From the sequence record OR538032.1: a stretch of DNA of 64,000 nt; one strand, written 5' to 3'. Of the stretch, positions 37,951 to 62,887 are shown in pieces. The translations under genes were made by a program, and so were the position numbers. Each line of letters opens with the position of its first letter. Within the stretch, counting starts at the first letter, position 1. The notes under the pieces were generated by a model, which was given only the letters and a program-made list of their open reading frames with translations, had not been told where the DNA came from and ran no database searches.

Positions 37951-38001
37951 TTAGTAGAATTAGTAGTTTTAGTGAAGTTAGTAATATTAGGAGTATTAGA
38001 A
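37951..38001 (+). repeat. Six TTAG-headed units with exact 9-bp period
   Basis: TTAG at 37951, 37960, 37969, 37978, 37987, 37996. Confidence 0.85.
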
Positions 38002-38696
38002 TGAAGAAGCTCGTACTTGTAGCTGCCGCTGCTGTAGCTCTTGTTGGATGTGGTGATTTGCCACGTCTGGAAACTAAGACAGACAAGAAATTCACCACGG
38101 TTAATGCAGTTGTGAACAAAAAAGAGCGTGAAATGATTAACTACTGGATGGCAGATGCTGACGGTAGTAACTATCTTTACAACAAGCTTTGGACTGCTCT
38201 TGCTACTCGTAACAAATACGGTTCTAATGCTGTGCGTCGTTCAGATGATGAAGTCCCGTTCTGTGATGTCATTGTAGCCCTTGCTAAATCTGAAGAAGGT
38301 ATTCGAAGCACGTACGAGCGCACATTTAACAATCAGTGGCGAACTCAATACGGCATTAGTCTTAATCAGCAATGTGGCTATACTCCACCAGAAACACTCG
38401 AAGAGCAAGCAGAGCGCATTGAGCAACTTGAAATGCAAGCTGATTTGAAAAAGCGTGAGCAACAAGCACAGAGTATTGAAACGCTTGATGACGTTGCCGA
38501 CGCGACGACTGAGTTACTTGATCCGCATGAGTACGACTATCTGATCGAATCGGCACGCGAGTGTAATCGAGCCAAAACCAAATTGCTTGAACTAACGCAA
38601 GCAGGCAAACCTCTGACACAAGCTGACGGCTCAGATGCACGTAAGCTAATTATCGAATGCAAAATGCATAAACTTGAAGTTGAATTGAATAAGTGA
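38001..38696 (+). CDS. Lipoprotein, paralogue of 50544-51263
   Basis: Lipobox ALVG-C; EVPFCDVI, NQW..QYGI, CNRAK, KLEVELNK. Confidence 0.8.
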   Translation: MKKLVLVAAAAVALVGCGDLPRLETKTDKKFTTVNAVVNKKEREMINYWMADADGSNYLYNKLWTALATRNKYGSNAVRRSDDEVPFCDVIVALAKSEEGIRSTYERTFNNQWRTQYGISLNQQCGYTPPETLEEQAERIEQLEMQADLKKREQQAQSIETLDDVADATTELLDPHEYDYLIESARECNRAKTKLLELTQAGKPLTQADGSDARKLIIECKMHKLEVELNK

Positions 38697-39554: not shown

Positions 39555-40085
39555 ATGCCAACTCCTACAACAGGTGCGATTTCAATCGGTACCGTTCGTG
39601 ATTATTTCAGTAGAACCGGCGCTGCTTCATTGTCTCAGTACTACAGAGGCGGCGGTATTGTTCCTGATATTACTGAAAACGCTCACGTACCAACTTCAGG
39701 CGCGATTAGCTTGAATGATTTGCGCGGTGTATATCGCTTGTCAACGTATACGACATCGTTTACGACAACATACAACACCACGGTTTCGACATCGAATACG
39801 ACTTCGCGTAGTACGTCAAGAAGTACAACTAGAAGTACTGCATACAATACAACTCGCTCGACTGCGTATACTACTACTTGGACAACTAGTCGAACTACGT
39901 CGGTGACTAAAGGTTCGTATTCGACATCATACACGACTTCTCGTGCTACATCACGTTCAACAGCATATAGCACGACACGTTCAACAGCTTATACGTCTAC
40001 GTGGACAACATCATGGACAACTACGTACAACACAACAATATCAACATCAAACACAACTTCACGAAGCACGCAAGTTGCAGTTTAA
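39555..40085 (+). CDS. Ser/Thr-rich repeat protein, probable fibre/needle or modification substrate
   Basis: RBS AAGGAA; start MPTPTT; two GAIS-type motifs; 28 tetrapeptide units around a TKGS turn. Confidence 0.8.
   Translation: MPTPTTGAISIGTVRDYFSRTGAASLSQYYRGGGIVPDITENAHVPTSGAISLNDLRGVYRLSTYTTSFTTTYNTTVSTSNTTSRSTSRSTTRSTAYNTTRSTAYTTTWTTSRTTSVTKGSYSTSYTTSRATSRSTAYSTTRSTAYTSTWTTSWTTTYNTTISTSNTTSRSTQVAV
39747..40082 (+). repeat. Coding tetrapeptide repeat (large residue + three mostly S/T), 14+14 units
   Basis: Y/F/W/R/V/I/N every fourth residue; arms share TTTYNTT[VI]STSNTTSRST and RSTAY.TTRSTAYT.TWTTS blocks. Confidence 0.9.
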
Positions 40086-40097
40086 CAAGGTTAAATT

Positions 40098-40316
40098 ATG
40101 AGCTACAATGAAGAACACGAGAACCGAATCAACGAGCTTGAGAACAAGGTTTCAAAGCTTGAGTCGATAATTGAAAATCTGGTTGAGTCAATGACTTCGA
40201 ACAGCGAAGCTATTATCGAACATATTGCATCACTTGAGACCGAGAGAGATTCGATTCTTGCATCATATGATGACAAACTTAATGAGATCGTGACCAAATA
40301 TGAACCCAAGCAATAG
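40098..40316 (+). CDS. Small coiled-coil protein
   Basis: Heptads INELENKVSKLESIIENL. Confidence 0.7.
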   Translation: MSYNEEHENRINELENKVSKLESIIENLVESMTSNSEAIIEHIASLETERDSILASYDDKLNEIVTKYEPKQ

Positions 40317-41154
40317 AGAAATGACTGGGTTCAATAACATTTCTCGCACCGGTAAGTTGAAATTACAAGCCGATGCAGACAACGTCCGTGCCATGTGTAT
40401 GGACGTTGTTCGTTTATTGAACTCCAAAAATATACCATCTAACTTCGACATCAATCACAATGACGGTGGTAACATCGGCGTGCATGAATGGGTGTCACAA
40501 ATCCGCTTCATTCACTTGAAATACATGAACGTTAATTTTCAAACGAAGATTTTCAAGCATGCCTATCACAACACTGAAAACGTCGTTGACTATTTTGACA
40601 CGTTCAAACATTCTGACAAATATCATCTTTCAGCGAAGCCTCGATTCTTAGAATATGAAAACGTCGTATTTCTATGCGGATCGAATGTACTTGAATTGGC
40701 AATTGACTTTGACAAGATTGATGCGTTGGTCGAACAATATCCTGATTTGGTGATTAAACCTCACCCGATTACGACGTTGTATTACATCAATATGCTTAAA
40801 TCTCGATATGGTTCAAAGCGAATTCTATCTCAGAAGATCAGTGGTGTTGATGTGCTTAAAGCTTCTAAACGTGTTTGGCTGCCTTCAACGTCTGAGTTCT
40901 GGTTCAGTGCTTTGAACTACGACAAAGAAATCGGGTTTATATCTAAAGATGGTTTCTGTGGAACATACACGTCAATCATCAACGCAGTGTGGGAATTGCA
41001 TGAAGAAACTGGTGATTCGCTGAAAGATATTGTGAATAAAATTATCTCGTCACCTTACTCAGGTCTTTATGGTAATATGACAGACTTTGAAGCGCATCAC
41101 GAGAAATACTGCAATGTGATTCTAGAACTCGGGGGCAATTTCGATAATGTATGA
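40300..41154 (+). CDS. GT-B fold glycosyltransferase-like (KpsS/sialyltransferase-type motifs)
   Basis: LVIKPHP followed by VLKASKRVWLPSTSEFWFSALNYDKEI. Confidence 0.6.
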   Translation: MNPSNREMTGFNNISRTGKLKLQADADNVRAMCMDVVRLLNSKNIPSNFDINHNDGGNIGVHEWVSQIRFIHLKYMNVNFQTKIFKHAYHNTENVVDYFDTFKHSDKYHLSAKPRFLEYENVVFLCGSNVLELAIDFDKIDALVEQYPDLVIKPHPITTLYYINMLKSRYGSKRILSQKISGVDVLKASKRVWLPSTSEFWFSALNYDKEIGFISKDGFCGTYTSIINAVWELHEETGDSLKDIVNKIISSPYSGLYGNMTDFEAHHEKYCNVILELGGNFDNV

Positions 41155-41779
41155 TTATGTAATTCACACGTCGATCAGTGACAAAAGTCAGTTAAACCAA
41201 CTTGCAATGTTTGTCGGGTCTTTCATCGAGACACACAAGAAAGGTCGCGTTGTCTGCGTGACTGATCTTGAACTTGATTTCACGATGCCTCGGCTGTCAT
41301 TTGAGAAAAAACTACCCGAAGAGTACGTTTTCATTTCAGTTGACAATCTATTTTTGCAAAAAACATACGGCGTGGTTAGCTACATTGATAGCGGCACTTG
41401 GCGATGTACTTGGCAAAAGAATGACCATGATGAGTTCGTTATTAAAAAGCATGGCGAAAGAAGCGGGTTGATTAACCCTGATATTGCGATTGCAAATTAC
41501 AATGTTTCGAGACATGGTGACCTCGACATGTATTACAACGCGCTTCGTTACATTGAGAACGCCATCACGATCAACTGCAAAGACTTTGCTCCTGCTGCTG
41601 AGAATAAAATCAACAGCTTTTACACGCTTGTATTTCCATGGGAGATTTATTTTCACGTTATGATCACTTACCAAGAGTATATTGATTCTGAATACGTTGA
41701 GCGAGTTCGCGCTAACTGTCATAAGTTCGCACACTCGGTTTATTACAGAAAATCAGGGTTGTTGCGTGATGGGTTATGA
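41147..41779 (+). CDS. Possible degenerate GT-A (GT8-like) glycosyltransferase
   Basis: AMFVGSFIETH...VVCVTD and YVFISVDNLF (imperfect DxD). Confidence 0.35.
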   Translation: MYDYVIHTSISDKSQLNQLAMFVGSFIETHKKGRVVCVTDLELDFTMPRLSFEKKLPEEYVFISVDNLFLQKTYGVVSYIDSGTWRCTWQKNDHDEFVIKKHGERSGLINPDIAIANYNVSRHGDLDMYYNALRYIENAITINCKDFAPAAENKINSFYTLVFPWEIYFHVMITYQEYIDSEYVERVRANCHKFAHSVYYRKSGLLRDGL

Positions 41780-42452
41780 TGAGATAATTCTAGTATCTGG
41801 GCTTGATAGTTTAGTTCTATACGAATTTCTTGAACGAAAGCCACACCCTGTTTACTTTAAATGGGGTTTTGCTATCGACGAACTTGAAATGGCTGCTTTG
41901 CCTGAAGAAACAACTATCATAGAAATGCCAGAGATTTTGCATTTGAAACATGATCCGTATGAGTTCAAGACGCCACGAAATCCCGATTTAATTGGTCGGA
42001 ATACGTTGATGTTTAACTCAGTTTTCCATGCATTTAGACCAAACGTAATTTATCGCGGGATGTTGAAAGGTGATGATTTCTATTACGACGCATCGCCTAC
42101 GCATTCGGATGAAATCGCAGCTATGTGGTCGAAAATGCTGAATAAAGATTGTCGAATTGAACAACCGTTCAAAGACAAAACGAAACGTGACATAATGCAA
42201 ATGGCGGTTGAATACGGGATTGACGCGAATTCATTGCAGCATTGTTACAATCGAGAACATAACTGTGGTCGATGTAGCAAGTGTGTAGATGCACATGTTA
42301 ATTCTATGTATACCGACAATCCAGACATCATGTGGCTGAAACGAATAGTTAATGACTCGGGTATGGCAGCATTGGCTAATCACATGTTTGGTGTTGATAC
42401 CGTTGACAGAATCAAGGAATTTCTAGATGAATTTGATCGAACAGACCGCTGA
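41769..42452 (+). CDS. QueC-like PP-loop ATPase
   Basis: VSGLDS, GRNTLMF, YYDAS, EQPF...TKRDI, CYNREHNCGRCSKC; start moved to ATG 41769. Confidence 0.75.
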   Translation: MGYDEIILVSGLDSLVLYEFLERKPHPVYFKWGFAIDELEMAALPEETTIIEMPEILHLKHDPYEFKTPRNPDLIGRNTLMFNSVFHAFRPNVIYRGMLKGDDFYYDASPTHSDEIAAMWSKMLNKDCRIEQPFKDKTKRDIMQMAVEYGIDANSLQHCYNREHNCGRCSKCVDAHVNSMYTDNPDIMWLKRIVNDSGMAALANHMFGVDTVDRIKEFLDEFDRTDR

Positions 42453-43320
42453 TAAATTCGAGCATAGTTACCGAGAAGACGTTCAAGGCGTACAGTGGTA
42501 TTTCGGTAGTCGAACGCATGATTTTTATCTGTATGGAATAGACTCTCTTATTGATAAAGTCAAAGACTACGATTTTATTGAAATCAAGCATGTTCAAGAG
42601 GGTACGCTGGTTAAACGAGGCGAAGCTGCGGTCACGATTACGATTACAGATCATAGTCGTATCGCATATGGGAACATGATTGAAACATTGTTGTACAATG
42701 AGTTGTGGTATTCGAGCACGGTCGGTACGATTTTACACCGTTGCCTTGATGTGTTGCATGAAAACGGCTATGACGCTCGGTCAGCATACCCTCAAATCGG
42801 ACGAGCGAGTTCAACGCCAGAACAATCAGCTAAAGCAAGGGATATGTTCGCTCGTATATTTTATCAATCATCGAATGAGAAAATACCCGTTGCGATGCAC
42901 AGTGATATTCTAATCAACGGTGAGGAATATTGCATGGAGCATTATAACGGCATCATGATTGATACTTTCGATAAGCAAGCTTGCATTGACTTGATCAACA
43001 AGAAAGACTTTCGAGGGACTGTGATGGTTGACTCTCAGCCAATAATTGAAACAATTGAGAAAGTTCTAGCTGAAACAAAATGCTTTGTTGCACAAGCTGA
43101 AAGTGTTACACTCGATGAGTGGATAGAGATAGTGCGACATTTTAAAGGTAATAATCGAATTTTCTACGGGATTGGTAGCTTTGCATTTAGCAATATATCA
43201 CGAGACACATTTGGGTTGATTTACAAAGTGTGTGCAGTTAAGAGAAACGACAATTGGATCGGTGTTTCAAAGATGACGACAGGTAAACAAACATCGGCTG
43301 GTTATAAGGTTATAGGTTAG
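42427..43320 (+). CDS. Compact divergent NAMPT/NadV-like phosphoribosyltransferase
   Basis: Colinear motifs with NadV at 46486: EGTLV, IETLL...LWYSSTVGT, MHS, IDTFD, YGIG...SRDT, SKM. Confidence 0.75.
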   Translation: MNLIEQTADKFEHSYREDVQGVQWYFGSRTHDFYLYGIDSLIDKVKDYDFIEIKHVQEGTLVKRGEAAVTITITDHSRIAYGNMIETLLYNELWYSSTVGTILHRCLDVLHENGYDARSAYPQIGRASSTPEQSAKARDMFARIFYQSSNEKIPVAMHSDILINGEEYCMEHYNGIMIDTFDKQACIDLINKKDFRGTVMVDSQPIIETIEKVLAETKCFVAQAESVTLDEWIEIVRHFKGNNRIFYGIGSFAFSNISRDTFGLIYKVCAVKRNDNWIGVSKMTTGKQTSAGYKVIG

Positions 43321-43322
43321 TT

Positions 43323-44312
43323 ATGAATTATTGTATATCGCCATTTACATCGCCGTCTATTACACCAGACGGTTTTAAAATTTGCACCATGCCGGGTCAG
43401 AAAGTATACCCTGATATTTCATTCTGGAATAGTGATGAAGTGATCAAGATTCGCGAACAGATTATCGCTGGTGAAATACCTGAATCGTGTAAGACATGTC
43501 GTAGTATGCGTGACGGGTTGATTGTGTCAAAAGAAAAACCAACTGATACTCATGTTGACTTGAATTTCAAAGCTCTTTACATTGCGCGGTCGAACAAGTG
43601 TGAATATGCTTGTGAAATGTGCAGTTCATCAATCTCACATAGCTATGACAAGAAATACAATGACGGTAAGTTGGGGATTATCGAGAATGACTTTGATGTT
43701 ATTCCGTACCTGCACGAAACACAAGCCGTTGCTATTTCGGGCGGGAACCCTGTCATTGACAAAAAGGTTGCAGAGATTCTTGAGAATCTAGACCCTGACG
43801 TGGTAAAACATTTCATCATTACCTCAAATGGTACAGTCTTTCCAGACAGATTCTTGAATGCAATTAAGCGATTGAAATGCAACGCGACTATGATATTCTC
43901 TATGGACGGACCGAAAGAGTTTAATGAAGTGGTTCGATCTGGTGCGAAGCAAGAGAGAATCTATCGCACCATTAATCGAGTTCTTGACGAGATTGAAGAT
44001 TACCCAAACTTGCATGTGGCAATTGAATACACTTTCACGAATAAGTCAATTCATCACTACGTTGATTTGTATGATGAAATGCTCTTCGAGATCAACCCGA
44101 AGCATTTGAAAAACAACAAAGTTAATGTGATTGCGAATATGTGTACATACCCGCATCACCTTAGCGTTACAACTGTTCCCAAATCCGTCATTGATGACAT
44201 ATTGTTCAATCAGTTGCCATATTTGAGAAAGCAACCCAGCCCATTGTCAAATCAATTCAAACTTGGTTATGATAAGTTTTTGACTCAGTATCACAACAGC
44301 GTGATTATGTGA
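43323..44312 (+). CDS. Radical SAM protein with N-terminal twitch domain
   Basis: YCISPF..C..CKTC N-terminus; CEYACEMC; SGGNP; TSNGT; SMDG. Confidence 0.85.
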   Translation: MNYCISPFTSPSITPDGFKICTMPGQKVYPDISFWNSDEVIKIREQIIAGEIPESCKTCRSMRDGLIVSKEKPTDTHVDLNFKALYIARSNKCEYACEMCSSSISHSYDKKYNDGKLGIIENDFDVIPYLHETQAVAISGGNPVIDKKVAEILENLDPDVVKHFIITSNGTVFPDRFLNAIKRLKCNATMIFSMDGPKEFNEVVRSGAKQERIYRTINRVLDEIEDYPNLHVAIEYTFTNKSIHHYVDLYDEMLFEINPKHLKNNKVNVIANMCTYPHHLSVTTVPKSVIDDILFNQLPYLRKQPSPLSNQFKLGYDKFLTQYHNSVIM

Positions 44313-45429
44313 TCAGATCATACGCTTTGATGTGTGAGTAAAACTCTGGACACGCAGACGATAAATTAGTTTTCGTCTTCGTGTCTATTCTCTTGTTAAG
44401 CACAAAGAATTCAGGGTTGAATTTACAAACACTGTGTTTCAGAGTAAGACATTCAGCAACGTGCTTGAATGGTCTAGACAAATCCTCACGCCCATCTTTT
44501 AAATACGCTTCTTCTTTCACTTTGAATCTTGATAATAGCTGGTCTCGAAATGCAACTGGAATGTTGTAAATTGAGTATGGATTATCAGGCTCACCAACGA
44601 CATGTACAGACAGACGTACACGTTCACCATCATAAAGCGAATCAAAATCTGAAACCAGTGTTTCAAGATGTTCAAGAGTCACGTTTGACACGGTCGCAGT
44701 GATAACTACATCAAAGTGTTCCTTGATGATTTCAATGTTTGATTTGACTTTCTTGATGTCTGCAAACAATCGAATATAATCTTGGTATTCTCGTAGACCG
44801 TCGATTGATACGAACACCGTTGATGCATTAGCTTCTTTAAGCGATTTGATGAGATCTGAGCCATCGGCTAACACTAGTGATGAACCATTCGTGAAAATAT
44901 TCACCGTGCCTTTAATGTCGCCTACGCTGCGAAGAACTTCAGGAGCATTTGACGAGCGGGTAATTTCACCACCTAGAATTGTCAATGATGAAAGCCCTTT
45001 GCTGATTGTGTTGATTGTCGTACTCAAATCATTGAATCGAGTACTTGAATCTTCTTCATTAAACAATCTAGCTTTCAAGTCTGATAATTTGCTATAGCAG
45101 TAACGACAAGCGTGGTTACATTCATTACTAGGGAATACTTGTAGCCAGCGAACTGAATCGGCAGGCATGATTGGTGAAACTTCAGAATCGTGTTCGGTTA
45201 GGCGCTGTGGATCATTATCAGTGATGCACATTTGACATGCCTTTGATAGCTTGCTCATGTCGTGGTTTAGCATTGCTTCACGATAAGCGACAAGCTTTTC
45301 ATCATTCCAAGCGTCTGCTAGTGTTTTTTCATCAGTAAACCATTCATAATCAGCCGAACAGCAAAACGTAATTTGATTGTTTGCTCGTGTGATGAACTGC
45401 TTGAACGGCATATAACATAGTGGTTTCAT
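44305..45429 (-). CDS. Radical SAM protein with N-terminal twitch domain
   Basis: LCYMPF..FCC..CQMC; CNHACRYC; LGGE; FTNGS; SIDG. Confidence 0.85.
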   Translation of the reverse strand: MKPLCYMPFKQFITRANNQITFCCSADYEWFTDEKTLADAWNDEKLVAYREAMLNHDMSKLSKACQMCITDNDPQRLTEHDSEVSPIMPADSVRWLQVFPSNECNHACRYCYSKLSDLKARLFNEEDSSTRFNDLSTTINTISKGLSSLTILGGEITRSSNAPEVLRSVGDIKGTVNIFTNGSSLVLADGSDLIKSLKEANASTVFVSIDGLREYQDYIRLFADIKKVKSNIEIIKEHFDVVITATVSNVTLEHLETLVSDFDSLYDGERVRLSVHVVGEPDNPYSIYNIPVAFRDQLLSRFKVKEEAYLKDGREDLSRPFKHVAECLTLKHSVCKFNPEFFVLNKRIDTKTKTNLSSACPEFYSHIKAYDLIT

Positions 45430-45439
45430 GCTTCTGTCC

Positions 45440-46012
45440 TTAGTTAAAAATGCTACTTGTATATATAGCGGTCTTCAGGGCATTGAAATGATCGTCAACT
45501 CTATTCACGTGTATGCATTCAATGTCAAATCTTTCTTGGATTTCTCGGATGTTGTCTAGCGAGTCGTCGATGAAGTACTTCACATCATGCAGTTCACACA
45601 GCTTCTCGACATACTTTGCCTTCGAGTCGAAGTACTCAATCGAAATCACTTCACTTATCATTCCTGGGAATAACGCATTTAGATTATGCACGCGATTTGA
45701 CCATGAAGTTCTACTCATGCTGAACTTGGTTAGTGCAATGATGTTATAACGGTCTGAGAGTTCGCGTAACGCATCGTAAGCGTCTTCATATGCTGGTATG
45801 TACTTTGCACACTCATGTTCATTGTATGCCCCTATAAGCTTTCCTAGTTGCATGTCGCTCACGTTAATAAATAAAGAGCGTGCATCGGTATCAGTATTTG
45901 AACCGTTGATATTCAAATTATCAAGCATGCCTAATTGCATCATGAAGAATGGCAAGTTGGCTTTCCAGTTAAGCAAAACCCCGTCTACATCTATGATGAT
46001 AGTCTTTTTCAT
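45440..46012 (-). CDS. HAD phosphatase, 5'(3')-nucleotidase-like
   Basis: IDVDGVLL, ALTK, K, FIDDSLDN; RBS GAGG. Confidence 0.8.
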   Translation of the reverse strand: MKKTIIIDVDGVLLNWKANLPFFMMQLGMLDNLNINGSNTDTDARSLFINVSDMQLGKLIGAYNEHECAKYIPAYEDAYDALRELSDRYNIIALTKFSMSRTSWSNRVHNLNALFPGMISEVISIEYFDSKAKYVEKLCELHDVKYFIDDSLDNIREIQERFDIECIHVNRVDDHFNALKTAIYTSSIFN

Positions 46013-46485: not shown

Positions 46486-47979
46486 ATGCTAAATCTTACT
46501 CAAAATATCGCAATCGCAACTGACAGCTACAAAGTTTCACACTGGTCTCAATTCCCTCGTGGTCTAGAGTACAGCCAATATTACGTCGAAAGCCGGGGTG
46601 GTAAGTTCGACAAAATTATGGTCGATGGTATGGCATACATGTGTCGTATTCTCGAAAAAGGTGTTTCGATGAACGATGTCAAGCGTGCGAAACGTCTGTT
46701 CAAAAAGCACTTCGGTTCTGAAGTCTTCAATGACAAGGGTTGGGACATCATCGTTAACGAACTGAAAGGCAAACTGCCTATTAAGATTCGTGCGGTCAAA
46801 GAAGGTACTGTAGTACCAGTTAAACACCCTATCTTGACGATTGAGAACACAGATCCGCGTTTTGGTTGGCTGCCTGGCTATCTTGAAACGTTCATCTTGC
46901 GTGCTCTTTGGTACCCGACAACTGTAGCAACGATCTCGTTCGAAGTGAAGAAAATCATTCGCCAATTCATGAAGAAGACGGTTGATGATGAACGCATTGC
47001 AGAACAAGAGCCGTTCAAACTTCACGACTTTGGTTCTCGTGGTGTATCAAGTGGCGAATCAGCGGCTATCGGCGGCTCTGCTCACTTGAAAAACTTCTTG
47101 GGTACTGACACTGTAGAAGCACTTGTTGCAGTTGAAGAACTTTACGCTGAAGATGTTGAAGATTTCATTGCGGGATTCTCTATCCCTGCACGTGAACACT
47201 CAACAACTACAATCTACAAAGAAGTTGGTGAAGATCAAGCATTCTTGAACTCTATCGAGCAATGGGGTGCGGCATTATACGCTTGTGTAATGGACAGCTA
47301 CGACTACGAAGCAGCAATGAATCGTGTCTCGACTGGTCGCTTCAAAGAGCTAATCATCAGCAAAGGCGGTACGTTTGTTGCTCGTCCTGACTCTGGTGTG
47401 CCTGTAGATGTAGTAATGAAAGGTCTTGAGATTCTTGGTAAAAACGTTGGTTATACAATCAACAGCAAGGGTTACAAAGTATTGCACCCTAGCTACCGCA
47501 TCATTCAAGGCGACGGCGTGAACATCGAAGAAATTCGTCGAATTCTGTCTTACATGGAAAGTAAAGGCTGGTCGGCAGAAAACATTGCATTTGGCATGGG
47601 TGGTGGTTTGCTTCAGCAACTCGACCGTGATACTCAACGCTTTGCAATGAAAATGTCAGCGGCAATCATCAACGGCGAATACGTTAGCGTGTTCAAAATG
47701 CCGAAGACTGACCCGACAAAAGCATCAAAAGCAGGTTTCTTAGATTTGATTGCAGTCGATGCAGACAATCCGAACCCAGCGGCTCGTGGTTACGTGACGT
47801 TCTCTTCTGAAGATTACGACAATCGCGTACACCCGAAAAGCGTGATGCAGACAATCTTTGAAGACGGTGTAACAGTTGCTGACTTCTCACTCGAAGAAGC
47901 TCGTAAACTGTCTGACGTACAAGCTGATTTCCTGAACGAAGGTGAATGGAAAATCGCGAAAAAGATTCAAACTGCGTAA
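46486..47979 (+). CDS. nadV: Nicotinamide phosphoribosyltransferase
   Basis: ATDSYKVSH, LHDFGSRG, GTDT, PAREHS, RPDSG, QGDGV, GMGGGLLQ, RDT. Confidence 0.95.
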   Translation: MLNLTQNIAIATDSYKVSHWSQFPRGLEYSQYYVESRGGKFDKIMVDGMAYMCRILEKGVSMNDVKRAKRLFKKHFGSEVFNDKGWDIIVNELKGKLPIKIRAVKEGTVVPVKHPILTIENTDPRFGWLPGYLETFILRALWYPTTVATISFEVKKIIRQFMKKTVDDERIAEQEPFKLHDFGSRGVSSGESAAIGGSAHLKNFLGTDTVEALVAVEELYAEDVEDFIAGFSIPAREHSTTTIYKEVGEDQAFLNSIEQWGAALYACVMDSYDYEAAMNRVSTGRFKELIISKGGTFVARPDSGVPVDVVMKGLEILGKNVGYTINSKGYKVLHPSYRIIQGDGVNIEEIRRILSYMESKGWSAENIAFGMGGGLLQQLDRDTQRFAMKMSAAIINGEYVSVFKMPKTDPTKASKAGFLDLIAVDADNPNPAARGYVTFSSEDYDNRVHPKSVMQTIFEDGVTVADFSLEEARKLSDVQADFLNEGEWKIAKKIQTA

Positions 47980-51715: not shown

Positions 51716-52768
51716 TCATTTCACCATTTTGATTTGAATCTGATTGTCCATGTAAGCCATTTTCTTTTCAAATTCAACATCATATTCTGGTCGATGTTCG
51801 TATTCGACTGAAAGCATTTGCTTCAGACAACGGTACAATTCCGACTTGTAATACCCTTCTTTCATTCCCTTCATCTGTTCATATTGCTTTTTCATAGCAG
51901 CTTTGATTATCTTCGGGTCCATGAATTTGATTGACATTTCTCGCGGTGCTTTTACTGTGCCAAAGTCAACAAACACCTGAGCCTTTTCAGCTACTTGAAT
52001 GAAGTCATAAATCGTGTCATAACTCATTCGACTTAGCGTGTGGTGCATACAAACATGTTTGCTATGTTCTTTTAGCAACGGTACATTTGCAAGCATCAAG
52101 TCGTGGTCGATGTTCTGACGAATGTATTCGTTGCGCTCTTTTCCGCCGTCACATGAAATTGTAAACACTAGACGATGTTTGTACTTTTTACATATGGCTA
52201 GAATCTTCTTCGCAAGTGTCGTATGCAACACAGTACCATTTGTCAGAATGTAAACTTCCGCATTTGTTTCTTCCATGACTTCAGTCAGAACTTCGACTGT
52301 TCTCTTGTCCATGAACGGTTCGCCGCCGTATAGCACAACAGTTTCAACACCCTTCGGGATACTGAAATCGAGTTGTGTGTAATCGTAATGGTCGTCAATG
52401 TCATACAAGTCCATGTATGTTTTGCTATTCTTGCCATAGCACATTCGACACGCTAGGTTACATTTGTTTGACATCAATATTTGAATTGTTCTAGGATGCT
52501 CTTCGAGTGCTTCATATTCGAAGTACTTCTGATCAGACAATTCGCCATAACTCATACATTCTTTGCAGTATTCTGGTAAAGTGTCATACTCAAACATTTT
52601 GGCACGATGTTCATTGATGATGTCACTGTGCCACCAGTCTTCAACGTTCGGGAATGGTTCACTTAGCTGAGAACAGCAAATGTGATACCCATCTGGTTTT
52701 GCGTCACGTGTATTAAAGGGAGAGCCACAAAGTGGTCTCTTCCCGTCTTTAAATCCGAATTTATCCAT
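51716..52768 (-). CDS. Radical SAM protein with N-terminal twitch domain
   Basis: LCGSPF..ICC..CKEC; CNLACRMC; YGGEPF; LTNGT; SCDG. Confidence 0.85.
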   Translation of the reverse strand: MDKFGFKDGKRPLCGSPFNTRDAKPDGYHICCSQLSEPFPNVEDWWHSDIINEHRAKMFEYDTLPEYCKECMSYGELSDQKYFEYEALEEHPRTIQILMSNKCNLACRMCYGKNSKTYMDLYDIDDHYDYTQLDFSIPKGVETVVLYGGEPFMDKRTVEVLTEVMEETNAEVYILTNGTVLHTTLAKKILAICKKYKHRLVFTISCDGGKERNEYIRQNIDHDLMLANVPLLKEHSKHVCMHHTLSRMSYDTIYDFIQVAEKAQVFVDFGTVKAPREMSIKFMDPKIIKAAMKKQYEQMKGMKEGYYKSELYRCLKQMLSVEYEHRPEYDVEFEKKMAYMDNQIQIKMVK

Positions 52769-53040
52769 TAATCTAGCTCATCAAGAAGTGATTGAAATTC
52801 TTCGTCGCGTTCAGCGTCGATTGTACCAGTCATCAACTCTGTTAGAGTCTTCAACGACTTGATCTCTGGTGGTTGAGGGCGTAGATCTTCGAGAATGTGA
52901 ATGATTGACTCGGCTGGGAGATCGTGATTTACAATCTCATCAGGCAGGTGGTGTTTGTAAACGCAGTCGTCGCCCCAATCAATAACTACTGCATGTTCCC
53001 ATTTGTCGATTTCTAGTATTTTAAAATTTGGTTTCATCAT
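52768..53040 (-). CDS. Small acidic hypothetical protein
   Basis: ATGA and TAATG coupling to both neighbours; start MMKPNF. Confidence 0.7.
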   Translation of the reverse strand: MMKPNFKILEIDKWEHAVVIDWGDDCVYKHHLPDEIVNHDLPAESIIHILEDLRPQPPEIKSLKTLTELMTGTIDAERDEEFQSLLDELD

Positions 53041-54038
53041 AAGCCCCAGAGTTCTTTCCAATGTGTTTTAGCATCTTGTCGATACTTCTCAATGTCAAAT
53101 TTTTGATATTTCTGTTCGATTGCATCATCAATGACGCGAATCAACGTATCATTGTTTATATCAGCACGAATCACTGGGAAAATAAAATCCCTTGTGTAAG
53201 GTGCGTCATGCTGAACAATACAAGGTATGTACTGACATGCTTCTAATAACGCATATGGCATAATCTCGATTCTAGACATATGAAGCAAAACTTTACTTTT
53301 CATCATATGTGCCATGACTCGCTCACGCCGTTGACAAGTTTCGACTATACAATCAACCCCACTCGGGATTCTTATTGGTTCGGTTGTGAATAGACGAATT
53401 TTAAGACCGCTGTATGCAAGCGCGTTTAGCATTTCGGGTATCTGCTTACGTTTGTATGCACCTGACACGATAATCACGTCAGACGCTTCAGCAGCGTCAA
53501 TATCAGCTTGTGATATAGACGGAAGCTCAAATGGTTCAAATGCAGTCACATGTTTGCCACCAATTACTTCTCGACCCCATTGTGCAATCCCGTTCGATTG
53601 AGCAATGTTAGTGACTAATGACGTTGACATCATGTGTCGCCATTGAGGTAAGTTGTAAATTTGATGAATGTCCATGTATTCGCGATATGAATCTGGTACT
53701 ATCAAGTCACCGAAATGATGTTGGTTGTAACAACGGCGCTTCGCTTCGATACATGCGCGGAGTGCTTCATATGAATGCGTGTAGATAATCGCTTCGCTAT
53801 CAATCGCGTTGATAACCATTGCGTTTGCCTTGTAGTCTTTATAAGACCGTTTCGTTAAAATGAAGTCACACCCGAAATCCCATTTGCTCACGTGTGGACA
53901 CGATTCGTCTCCGAGTACAATAACTTTGACATCACAGTTTAGTGATTGCATTAAACGAACGTGATCTTGAATGAATGTGTAAATACCGCCGCCAATTCCC
54001 AACATAAAGTCAGTTACTACGTAGCGAACTTTTTTCAT
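53037..54038 (-). CDS. GT4-like glycosyltransferase
   Basis: GIGGGIYTF acceptor loop; E-x7-E motif EIMPYALLEA followed by IPCI; RBS AGGAG. Confidence 0.7.
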   Translation of the reverse strand: MKKVRYVVTDFMLGIGGGIYTFIQDHVRLMQSLNCDVKVIVLGDESCPHVSKWDFGCDFILTKRSYKDYKANAMVINAIDSEAIIYTHSYEALRACIEAKRRCYNQHHFGDLIVPDSYREYMDIHQIYNLPQWRHMMSTSLVTNIAQSNGIAQWGREVIGGKHVTAFEPFELPSISQADIDAAEASDVIIVSGAYKRKQIPEMLNALAYSGLKIRLFTTEPIRIPSGVDCIVETCQRRERVMAHMMKSKVLLHMSRIEIMPYALLEACQYIPCIVQHDAPYTRDFIFPVIRADINNDTLIRVIDDAIEQKYQKFDIEKYRQDAKTHWKELWGL

Positions 54039-62005: not shown

Positions 62006-62887
62006 ATGCAGGTAAGATGGACAGAAATGTTTTACAGCATTCAAGGCGAAGGGAAATACACTGGTCAAGCTAGTTTATTCTTTCGCTTCTGGGGTTGTAA
62101 CTTAGAATGTCACGGCTTCGGGCAAGAAGATCCGACGAATAAAGATACATGGGTATTAGACTTCAAAGACTACGACCCGAAAGCTAACAACGTGACTTCA
62201 GTCGAAGAACTGCCTGTATGGACTCGTGGATGTGACTCTTCTTACACGTGGGCTAAAAAGTATGCTCATCTTGCTTCAAAGTCTGAAGTTGCAGACGTAT
62301 GCGAAGCAATGCTTGAGAAACTGCCTAATCGAGTTTGGGGAGATATTCATTGGGTAATTACAGGTGGTGAGCCGATGATGAATCAAGCTCAAATCATCGA
62401 AATGATGAATTACTTCATCAAAATTGACAATTATCCAAAACATGTCACGATTGAAACTAATGGTACGCGAGAACTCAAGCCAGAATTTGCAGAGCGTTGG
62501 GCGCTAATTCAGTGGAATACGCATCGTAATGTTCACTTGAGTTTCAGCGTGTCGGCTAAGTTGTACAACGTAACGGGCGAAGTGCATGAAAAAGCAATCA
62601 AGCCAAAAGTTGTCAACAAGTATGCACGCATCGGAGAAGTCTGGCTCAAGCCAGTCGTCGTAGACAAGGAAGCGTGTTGGGACGAGCTTGATGCTGTGAT
62701 CGCACAGTTCAAAGCAGAACGCAACTTACACAACGTTCCAGTGTATATCATGCCATGTGGTGCTACTCAAGAAGAGCAAGAGCAAGATGGTTATATGGCG
62801 TCAATCGCAGGGAAAGCATTGGCGCGTGGTTACAACGTTTCTGTACGAACACACGTATGGATTTGGGGTAACGCGGTGGGCACGTAA
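62006..62887 (+). CDS. queE: 7-carboxy-7-deazaguanine synthase (radical SAM)
   Basis: EMFYSIQGEG, FFRFWGCNLEC...CDS, ITGGEP, IETNGT, RTHVWIWG. Confidence 0.88.
   Translation: MQVRWTEMFYSIQGEGKYTGQASLFFRFWGCNLECHGFGQEDPTNKDTWVLDFKDYDPKANNVTSVEELPVWTRGCDSSYTWAKKYAHLASKSEVADVCEAMLEKLPNRVWGDIHWVITGGEPMMNQAQIIEMMNYFIKIDNYPKHVTIETNGTRELKPEFAERWALIQWNTHRNVHLSFSVSAKLYNVTGEVHEKAIKPKVVNKYARIGEVWLKPVVVDKEACWDELDAVIAQFKAERNLHNVPVYIMPCGATQEEQEQDGYMASIAGKALARGYNVSVRTHVWIWGNAVGT

Follow-up and report, generated by a model that had tools for sequence, protein, structure and literature searches.

QueC, Cap9 and probably QatC adenylate the carboxylate of 7-carboxy-7-deazaguanine (CDG), which is then attacked by ammonia or by a protein N-terminus. 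Cap9 and QatC attach the deazaguanine base to proteins in bacterial immunity, and three C-terminal helices of QatC form the docking base for its protein substrate, QatB. To our knowledge, each known setting of the QueC family pairs with an enzyme that joins a base to ribose, either TGT or DpdA, or Cap10. In the stretch of DNA analysed here, the 64,000 nucleotides from sequence record OR538032.1 (the window), a QueC-like gene overlaps a gene for a NAMPT-like enzyme:

41769-42452, plus strand: QueC-family paralogue P0001 (KVP40.0258 homologue, 227 aa), with the loop xSGxDS, four zinc-binding Cys and, at the C-terminus, about 50 aa of additional helical sequence
42427-43320, plus strand: miniaturised NAMPT-family phosphoribosyltransferase (KVP40.0259, 297 aa), with its own AAGGAA ribosome-binding site and a 26-nt overlap with the 3' end of the P0001 gene

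We tentatively favour the view that KVP40.0258 is an ATP-dependent carboxylate-amine ligase or amidotransferase that acts with the NAMPT-like phosphoribosyltransferase to modify a fibre-like protein.

Over the 5.7 kb around the QueC-like gene, identity is 100% with Vibrio phage PG216, whose coordinates agree with those here, and 96.7% with KVP40, which makes the window the opening 64 kb of a KVP40-like Schizotequatrovirus. The open reading frame of P0001 runs from an ATG at 41769 to a TGA at 42450-42452, while RefSeq KVP40 starts at a GTG at 41766. An AGGG ribosome-binding site lies 11 nt before the ATG, and the start is overlapped by the upstream gene. Public records already annotate the gene, as 'QueC-like queuosine biosynthesis' in RefSeq and as 'queC_1' in VH1_2019. 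However, the literature searched, including a 2026 survey of PF06508, contains no description of the clade, its altered loop or its obligate NAMPT-like partner, and a search for QueC/NAMPT or QueC-like/phosphoribosyltransferase pairing found nothing relevant. NARP3, which consists of PnuC plus NadR, is unrelated.

P0001 carries the motifs S10-G-L-D-S14, R77-N78, P133-FKDK-T138-K139 and C159-Y-NREHN-C166-GR-C169-SK-C172. The first-pass annotation had read these QueC hallmarks and the SGLDS loop from the letters of 41769-42452; all are present in the translation, the fold has now been modelled and the altered form of the loop is found throughout the clade. Pfam QueC (PF06508) matched P0001 with 36.7 bits against a cut-off of 22, over residues 76-173 only. 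The TIGR00364 equivalog for preQ0 synthase gave 28.8 bits over residues 104-173 only, below its cut-off of 150.3, and Pfam NAD_synthase, used to check for NadE, gave no match to P0001 at E <= 0.01. An AlphaFold model from 47 homologues (predicted local distance difference test score, pLDDT, 91.2) has the QueC fold. The PF06508 score, with the predicted PP-loop Rossmann fold and C-terminal zinc ribbon, places P0001 in the QueC superfamily.

The clade is tiny and confined to phages. When 1.84 billion cluster representatives were searched exhaustively without a profile, only 72 reached E <= 1e-3 and five E <= 1e-10, and the clade accounts for about 7 clusters among those representatives. A word-index protein search found close relatives only, and KVP40 itself was the sole return of an IMG/VR pattern scan. 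In a tree from a quick maximum-likelihood search, P0001 and P0003-P0008 form one clade (Shimodaira-Hasegawa-like approximate likelihood ratio test, SH-aLRT, 95) with P0020 as its sister, apart from the canonical QueC group, which holds KVP40.0124, and from a Cap9-like group with a CE-x6-C signature. The comparison with QueC and Cap9 that the first-pass annotation had called for thus puts P0001 with neither. The outgroup relatives P0009 and P0010, the two whose neighbourhoods were read, keep SGGxDS and adjoin genes for GTP cyclohydrolase I (FolE), as in ordinary deazaguanine clusters, whereas the clade members do not lie by FolE.

In P0001 the PP-loop reads V-S-G-L-D-S against the canonical SGGxDS. 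The two align in register, and a hydrophobic residue replaces the first Ser throughout the clade, which has h-S-G-[LIF]-D-S where all others have S-G-G-x-D-S. As SG[LIF]DS is invariant across the clade, down to 29% identity, the short loop is not a one-off mutation. The clade also has K-[WFL]-G-[FLM] in place of D-Y-G-Q, R-[NDT] in place of R-N and Y-x-[DE]-[ASN] in place of Y-P-D-C. The canonical YxQxHxxE motif, whose Y35 is essential in E. coli QueC, is lost in P0001, where F-K-W-G-F-A-I-D-E retains an aromatic residue and the final Glu. Of the VPxRN and YPDC motifs, R77 is invariant and Y105 and D107 persist, whereas relatives have D or T in place of N78, and Ala or Ser stands where YPDC has its Cys. 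The zinc motif, C159-x6-C166-x2-C169-x2-C172, has a shorter first spacer than the canonical C(x)8CxxCxxC. Its four Cys are invariant in the clade, as are G11, D13, S14, E40, R77 and K139, all of them at catalytic or ligand positions. R77, Y105 and D107 (D or E in the clade) align with R86, Y115 and D117 of Cap9, equivalences taken from sequence alignment rather than superposed coordinates; in the Cap9-CdnD structure these residues stack on and hydrogen-bond the conjugated deazaguanine. The pattern of residues suggests that the active site works on a planar acid but handles the nucleotide in an altered way.

Cap9 is the only sequence hit of P0001 in the PDB (E 1.9e-5) and the best structural match to its model (9nto_B; VIA Z 16.6, root-mean-square deviation 2.3 A over 167 residues), ahead of B. 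subtilis QueC (14.1), Erwinia QueC (13.8), QatC (13.0, model residues 1-214) and LarE (10-11). P0001 keeps the Arg, Tyr and Asp through which Cap9 contacts the conjugated 7-deazaguanine, the zinc site and the PF-x4-K motif, and both have a neighbouring enzyme of base-ribose chemistry, the TGT-like Cap10 in type IV CBASS and the NAMPT-like enzyme here. However, neither a CD-NTase nor Cap10 is present in the neighbourhood of the gene in the window or at any related locus, and P0001 is phage-encoded rather than part of a defence island. Cap9 has about 185 aa, against the 227 aa and C-terminal helical extension of P0001, and its LxSGGxDS and Y/FxQ motifs contrast with xSGxDS and K-W-G-F in P0001, which lies outside the Cap9-like clade and does not show the full Cap9 set of LxSGGxDS, Y/FxQx5E, YxDC and CEx6C. 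We rejected membership of P0001 in Cap9: the PADLOC 'QueC' (Cap9) model does not discriminate, scoring P0001 at 48 bits but canonical QueCs at 71-91 bits, and the tree separates the P0001 clade from the Cap9 group.

With QatC, P0001 shares a QueC core followed by a C-terminal helical extension. The QatC alignment, which reaches model residue 214, takes in most of these helices, a weak hint that in P0001 too they may serve a protein partner. P0001 differs in having no N-terminal extension, no QatC-specific motifs and no qatA, qatB or qatD neighbours; the QatC hidden Markov model did not match it, and its candidate partner has no MGTS N-terminus.

The genome has a separate, canonical QueC. A PF06508 search found two loci each in KVP40, VH1_2019 and another near record; in KVP40 these are a full-length 183-bit match at 73.7 kb, KVP40.0124, and a 36-bit match, the paralogue. 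KVP40.0124 clusters with FolE and with KVP40.0120 (QueD), 0122 (DpdA2) and 0123 (QueF or QueF-L), as assigned by Hutinet 2019 in the form quoted in PMC8056088, about 59 kb from the paralogue. PG216, which equals the window, has an identical copy of the canonical QueC at 226,729-227,442. This upholds the earlier suggestion of a non-canonical paralogue, and the fear that P0001 might be the only queC of its genome, or might group with canonical phage QueC, proved groundless. P0001 is 20% identical to KVP40.0124 over 136 residues. It shares with canonical QueC (KVP40.0124 and B. subtilis 3BL5) the fold, the Cys4 zinc site, the Arg of VPxRN, the Tyr and Asp of YPDC and a conserved Lys, but the identity of about 20% goes with an altered PP-loop and the loss of YxQxHxxE and the YPDC Cys, and its gene is not linked to queD, queE, folE or a transglycosylase gene.

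The paralogue is also dispensable in related phages with working deazaguanine modification. Canonical queC is found in 52 phage records (22 records at less than 99% identity to KVP40 QueC), and among the matches listed at least nine phages have it and no paralogue: ValKK3, VH7D, phi-Grn1, phi-ST2, R10Z, R11Z, Va3, XZ1 and PVA23. Modified DNA has been measured in phi-Grn1 and phi-ST2, and E. coli expressing DpdA2/DpdM of VH7D showed these to be functional (PMC10516641). DNA modification thus does not require the paralogue, and KVP40.0258 is not the phage's preQ0 synthase. The first-pass annotation had also pointed to the roughly 20 kb between the gene and queE at 62006. That open reading frame, 62006-62887, is KVP40.0284, which is listed as QueE (PMC8056088) and does lie about 19.5 kb downstream, but this distance has no bearing on the matter, since the canonical QueC also lies far from queE. 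KVP40.0284 has only weak matches to QueE models, mostly in its first 35 or so residues (best 48.6 bits against cut-offs of 200-300), and weak matches to generic radical S-adenosylmethionine (SAM) families as well; it has 293 aa, against 208-238 positions in the QueE models.

The most informative feature of the locus, which the first-pass annotation overlooked, is the overlapping NAMPT-like gene at 42427-43320. BLAST of the neighbours placed a NAMPT-family gene 3' of the QueC-like gene in all six lineages examined, and the miniaturised NAMPT was never found without a QueC-like gene. Besides KVP40, the lineages are represented by the following:

L013: NAMPT-like, 288 aa, 51% identity, on a T4-like metagenomic contig
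L016: NAMPT-like, 289 aa, 36% identity, its start overlapping the stop before it, on a contig with SU10-family capsid and adaptor genes
L022: NAMPT-like, 397 aa, on a second contig with SU10-family adaptor genes, which holds the sister P0020
L018: NAMPT-like, 404 aa, in a Chromobacterium phragmitis assembly
L026: NAMPT-like, 386 aa

The model of KVP40.0259 (pLDDT 90.3) has the NAMPT fold (Foldseek E about 1e-16, TMq about 0.8), and HMMER and MAFFT alignments show several conserved residues, among them the catalytic His and phosphate-binding residues. In an approximate mapping onto human NAMPT numbering, we take R126 to correspond to R196 and H158 to be the catalytic phospho-His; the other conserved residues are D179/D182, D202 (of a 'DSG' motif), R259-D260, K267, K282 and K287. 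By this mapping most residues at the positions that bind phosphoribosyl pyrophosphate (PRPP) and phosphate are kept. The position that we presume, again approximately, to be that of NAMPT R311 is Met or Leu in the clade and not conserved. The segment around what we take to be the amide-recognising (nicotinamide) Asp of NAMPT is deleted or variable in the clade, and the base specificity of the mini-NAMPT has therefore probably changed. The mini-NAMPT shares its fold and catalytic His with NARP2 (NadV/NatV) and Namat/NAMPT, but is 200 aa shorter, with internal deletions and no conserved amide-recognising Asp. A characterised NadV is encoded in the same window, at 46486-47979. The NAMPT-like partner suggests that the molecule handled is a heteroaromatic base, later ribosyl-phosphorylated, rather than a uronic or ulosonic sugar. 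The first-pass suggestion that CDG or such a sugar is joined to the fibre or its glycan gained no support here.

A candidate for the target of the cassette is encoded a little upstream:

39555-40085, plus strand: Thr/Ser-rich low-complexity protein (KVP40.0254), candidate cassette target, with two N-terminal SGxIS-type motifs and its likely start at the second Met

Its N-terminal motifs, S-G-x-I-S-[LI]-x-x-[IV] and S-G-x-I-S-[LI]-N-D-L-R-G, occur once in the 64-kb window. A regular-expression scan also found them in L011, L013, L016, L018 and L026, and did not find them in two control loci with ordinary phage QueCs; the N-terminal domain was also found in D479 by tblastn. The motif protein of L018 and L026 is encoded directly 5' of the QueC-like gene and 3' of tail fibres with S74 chaperone domains. 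The motif protein of L016 is Gly-rich, reaches 27 bits with the Pfam GP38 adhesin model (threshold 25) and is followed by a truncated QueC-like copy. The N-termini of the motif proteins are flexible, and position 2 is occupied by a small residue: Pro in KVP40.0254, Ser in L016 and L026 and Gly in L018. A conserved C-terminal Val, considered as a further common feature, was rejected, failing in 6E35.1a and L018.

The QueC-like, mini-NAMPT, radical SAM (0260), glycosyltransferase-like (GT-like; 0256) and KVP40.0254 N-terminal sequences are each present in 35 Vibrio phage records out of 50,697, and among the matches listed these are the same 35 records for all five. The extra matches were five partial ones to 0256 in Caulobacter phages and three to 0254, one of them annotated 'tail fiber domain'. 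NadV and canonical QueC are more widespread than the cassette. On this comparative evidence the link between the cassette and a fibre- or adhesin-like protein appears fairly strong, although it falls short of proving that this protein is the substrate. The first-pass annotation had spoken of a 'fibre/glycosyltransferase operon'. The common inheritance with a fibre-like Thr-rich protein and GT-like genes bears this out in part, but the glycosyltransferase match (GT52) is below threshold and the term 'fibre' is inferred from relatives.

Since the partner place held by TGT, DpdA or Cap10 elsewhere in the family is here filled by a NAMPT-like enzyme, we propose acyl-adenylation, transfer to an amine and phosphoribosylation. 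KVP40.0258 would be a catalytically active, re-specialised PP-loop enzyme of the QueC (PF06508) family that uses ATP to form the acyl-adenylate of a planar heteroaromatic carboxylate. The acyl group would pass to an amine, which may be ammonia or an amino group on a protein or on the glycan of that protein, and the translationally coupled NAMPT-like enzyme would make an N-ribosidic bond to the same base from PRPP. The two enzymes, in most cases joined by a radical SAM enzyme, would belong to an accessory cassette that matures or decorates a fibre-like protein. The common denominator of the cassette would be a tail-fibre-like protein with a double 'SGxIS' N-terminus and a low-complexity body, Thr-rich in KVP40 and Gly-rich and gp38-like elsewhere. 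Shared inheritance and synteny make this protein or its glycan the likeliest destination. In P0004 (558 aa; L013:8001-9677, also L014 and L015) the QueC-like domain is fused to a homologue of the radical SAM enzyme KVP40.0260 (61% identity), on three independent contigs. The small radical SAM-like gene of L018 and L026, which separates their QueC-like gene from the NAMPT-like one, is of another kind.

LarE provides a precedent, by analogy, for coupling a PP-loop fold to nicotinate-type nucleotides. It is a PF06508-related PP-loop enzyme that adenylates the pyridine carboxylate of a mononucleotide, but it transfers sulfur and has no QueC zinc motif, and no larB or larC neighbours are present at the P0001 locus. 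A more specific proposal, which we consider unlikely, is a nucleobase-protein conjugation system paralleling Cap9/Cap10. The QueC-like enzyme would attach a nicotinate-type acid or CDG to an amine of the SGxIS-motif protein, such as its N-terminus, and the NAMPT-like enzyme would phosphoribosylate the tethered base, leaving a nucleotide, for example one resembling nicotinamide mononucleotide (NMN), on a virion protein.

Several observations weigh against modification of a fibre-like protein by an active ligase or amidotransferase. The whole clade lacks the first PP-loop Ser, which Cap9 needs, as judged from the S18A/S23A mutant, and use of ATP is therefore not assured. The KVP40 cassette lies outside the structural module and adjoins NadV, which a metabolic role would fit equally well. 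Tail-fibre neighbours are often unrelated morons. L022 has no motif protein within 7 kb, and the motif proteins have no conserved N-terminal Met-Gly acceptor of the kind found in CdnD and QatB. The T4-type late promoter TATAAATA has no match on either strand of the 64-kb window, against 2.4 expected by chance. In the table for 6E35.1a, an unlabelled numeric column that may record virion detection is blank for the cassette proteins. We rejected a reading of the numeric columns of this table as virion proteomics for the radical SAM enzyme; read without their header, they seem to give evolutionary statistics for core genes.

The main rival is a small-molecule pathway of pyridine nucleotides, for NAD-type salvage or anti-defence, which is possible but to our minds less probable than modification of a fibre-like protein. 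The mini-NAMPT would join nicotinate or a related base to PRPP, and the QueC-like enzyme would amidate the base or nicotinate mononucleotide with ATP and ammonia. The resulting NMN would feed the phage NMN adenylyltransferase and so extend the NadV/NatV route. The enzymes fit such a route. The partner that never varies, a NadV paralogue, keeps the catalytic His and most PRPP-binding positions, and the position of the nicotinamide-recognising Asp is not conserved in it; QueC converts a carboxylate to an amide on a free heteroaromatic base (PMC13329287), and LarE uses a derivative of nicotinate mononucleotide. The cassette lies about 3 kb from nadV in KVP40 and beside a NADAR-domain gene in L013, and reconstitution of NAD is an established phage counter-defence. 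The distribution and the radical SAM fusion do not fit. NadV and NARP2 are core (18/18 genomes), whereas the pair is accessory, with a 35-record distribution common to the Thr-rich, GT-like and radical SAM genes, and in four non-T4 lineages it lies within tail-fibre modules. The fused radical SAM domain would have no role in the pathway, and the missing Pfam NAD_synthase signal offers it no support.

It also seems unlikely that P0001 is a non-catalytic protein with a QueC fold, whether chaperone, assembly factor or decoy, for example against host Cap9 or QatC systems. The loss of the first PP-loop Ser throughout the clade would agree with this, as would the truncated L016 copy, which has no Cys motif and comes right after an adhesin-like gene, and a DefenseFinder-type scan in the 6E35.1a study called the homologue a CBASS QueC. 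However, the invariance of D13, S14, E40, R77, K139 and the four Cys down to 29% identity would be unexpected for a scaffold, and the NAMPT partner keeps its catalytic His and phosphate-binding residues. Slightly less weight falls on an amidotransferase acting on a sugar acid or acetamido sugar, which would form an amide or amidine, in the style of WbpG/PseA, on a glycan sugar attached to the Thr/Ser-rich protein by the GT-like proteins. PF06508 does include N-acetyl sugar amidotransferases, the operon holds GT-like, HAD and radical SAM genes, and sister lineages add 2-oxoglutarate oxygenase-like, kinase-like and annotated nucleotidyl transferase genes. P0001, however, has neither signature of these amidotransferases (WbpG/PseA, PF06508 cluster 5; PMC13329287), the SGGxDSxY loop and the reordered CxxC(x)6CxC that precedes the YDC triad, and retains the QueC-type residues that contact a base. 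GT-like genes are absent from L016, L018, L022 and L026 while the NAMPT-like gene is always present, and the GT52 match is sub-threshold. Least probable of all, and very improbable in itself, is a spare or variant 7-deazaguanine enzyme for DNA modification, either a second preQ0 synthase or a QueC*-type ADG synthase. Membership of the QueC family, the production of CDG by the phage (QueE at 62006) and the retention of matches to E. coli R99, Y131 and Y189, with Y35 changed to Trp, speak for it. It is opposed by the full canonical QueC, by the lack of the paralogue in ValKK3, VH7D, phi-Grn1 and phi-ST2, by the loss of YxQxHxxE and the YPDC Cys with a TIGR00364 score of 28.8 against 150.3 bits, and by the position of outgroup P0009 and P0010, and not of clade members, beside FolE.

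The remaining genes around the pair in the window are as follows:

43323-44312, plus strand: radical SAM enzyme with an N-terminal twitch domain (KVP40.0260)
44305-45429, minus strand: second twitch radical SAM paralogue (KVP40.0261), convergent with the operon
41147-41779, plus strand: conserved 210-aa protein (KVP40.0257, phrog_30897), with only a weak language-model lead to nucleotide-sugar transferases
40300-41154, plus strand: GT-like protein of 284 aa (KVP40.0256), its GT52 match below threshold at 19.6 against 26.1 bits
40098-40316, plus strand: small 72-aa protein (KVP40.0255), possibly a coiled coil as judged by eye, conserved within the cassette
45440-46012, minus strand: HAD-like homologue of T4 30.2, adjoining all T4-like versions of the cassette

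PDB sequence searches with KVP40.0256 and KVP40.0257 gave no match. Whether the HAD-like gene belongs to the cassette is uncertain, because its PHROG family has a named T4 homologue (30.2). Further along the minus strand, at 51716-54038, a third twitch radical SAM paralogue, a small open reading frame and a homologue of KVP40.0274 (with a PF00534 note in KVP40) form a separate cassette amid plus-strand genes. The 231-aa product of 38001-38696, a homologue of KVP40.0252, starts with a lipoprotein-like signal sequence ending in Cys, and a supplementary table gives its 6E35.1a homologue a value in a column that may stand for detection in virions.

The related loci vary in content. In phages of the 6E35.1a type and of L013, a 210-223-aa protein is encoded between the QueC-like and NAMPT-like genes (L011:7671-8342, L013:9800-10432). 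Its H-x-D ... H pattern resembles, as a motif reading, that of Fe(II)/2-oxoglutarate oxygenases, and it has no Pfam match. Just 3' of the L013 cassette come genes for a NADAR-domain protein and for a PP-binding carrier protein (L013:14262-15579). The operon at L026:3126-7020, 3' of an S74-type tail fibre, encodes a 178-aa SGEIS-motif protein, a QueC-like protein, a radical SAM-like protein, the NAMPT-like enzyme (386 aa) and a second QueC-like protein; the two PP-loops read V-G-G-F-D-S and V-S-G-F-D-S respectively. The truncated second QueC-like copy in L016 (L016:12130-12585, 151 aa), directly 3' of the gene for the Gly-rich gp38-like adhesin, has the loop S-G-L-S-S and lacks the Cys motif and the central region; it may be a non-catalytic derivative.

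In several records the QueC-like gene of KVP40-type phages is annotated as a 7-cyano-7-deazaguanine synthase (queC_1) or as a member of the anti-restriction deazaguanine pathway, and the evidence is against both. The cassette instead points to a modification chemistry that has not been described. The system is small, with two to seven genes, and testable: it comes from a cultured phage, close relatives of which grow on Vibrio natriegens. It opens the questions of which other carboxylates the QueC fold ligates and whether phage receptor-binding proteins are decorated with nucleobases or nucleotides. The clade would be a phage-side re-use of the scaffold of Cap9 and QatC, with a new and strictly conserved partner, the mini-NAMPT, and a plausible protein target.

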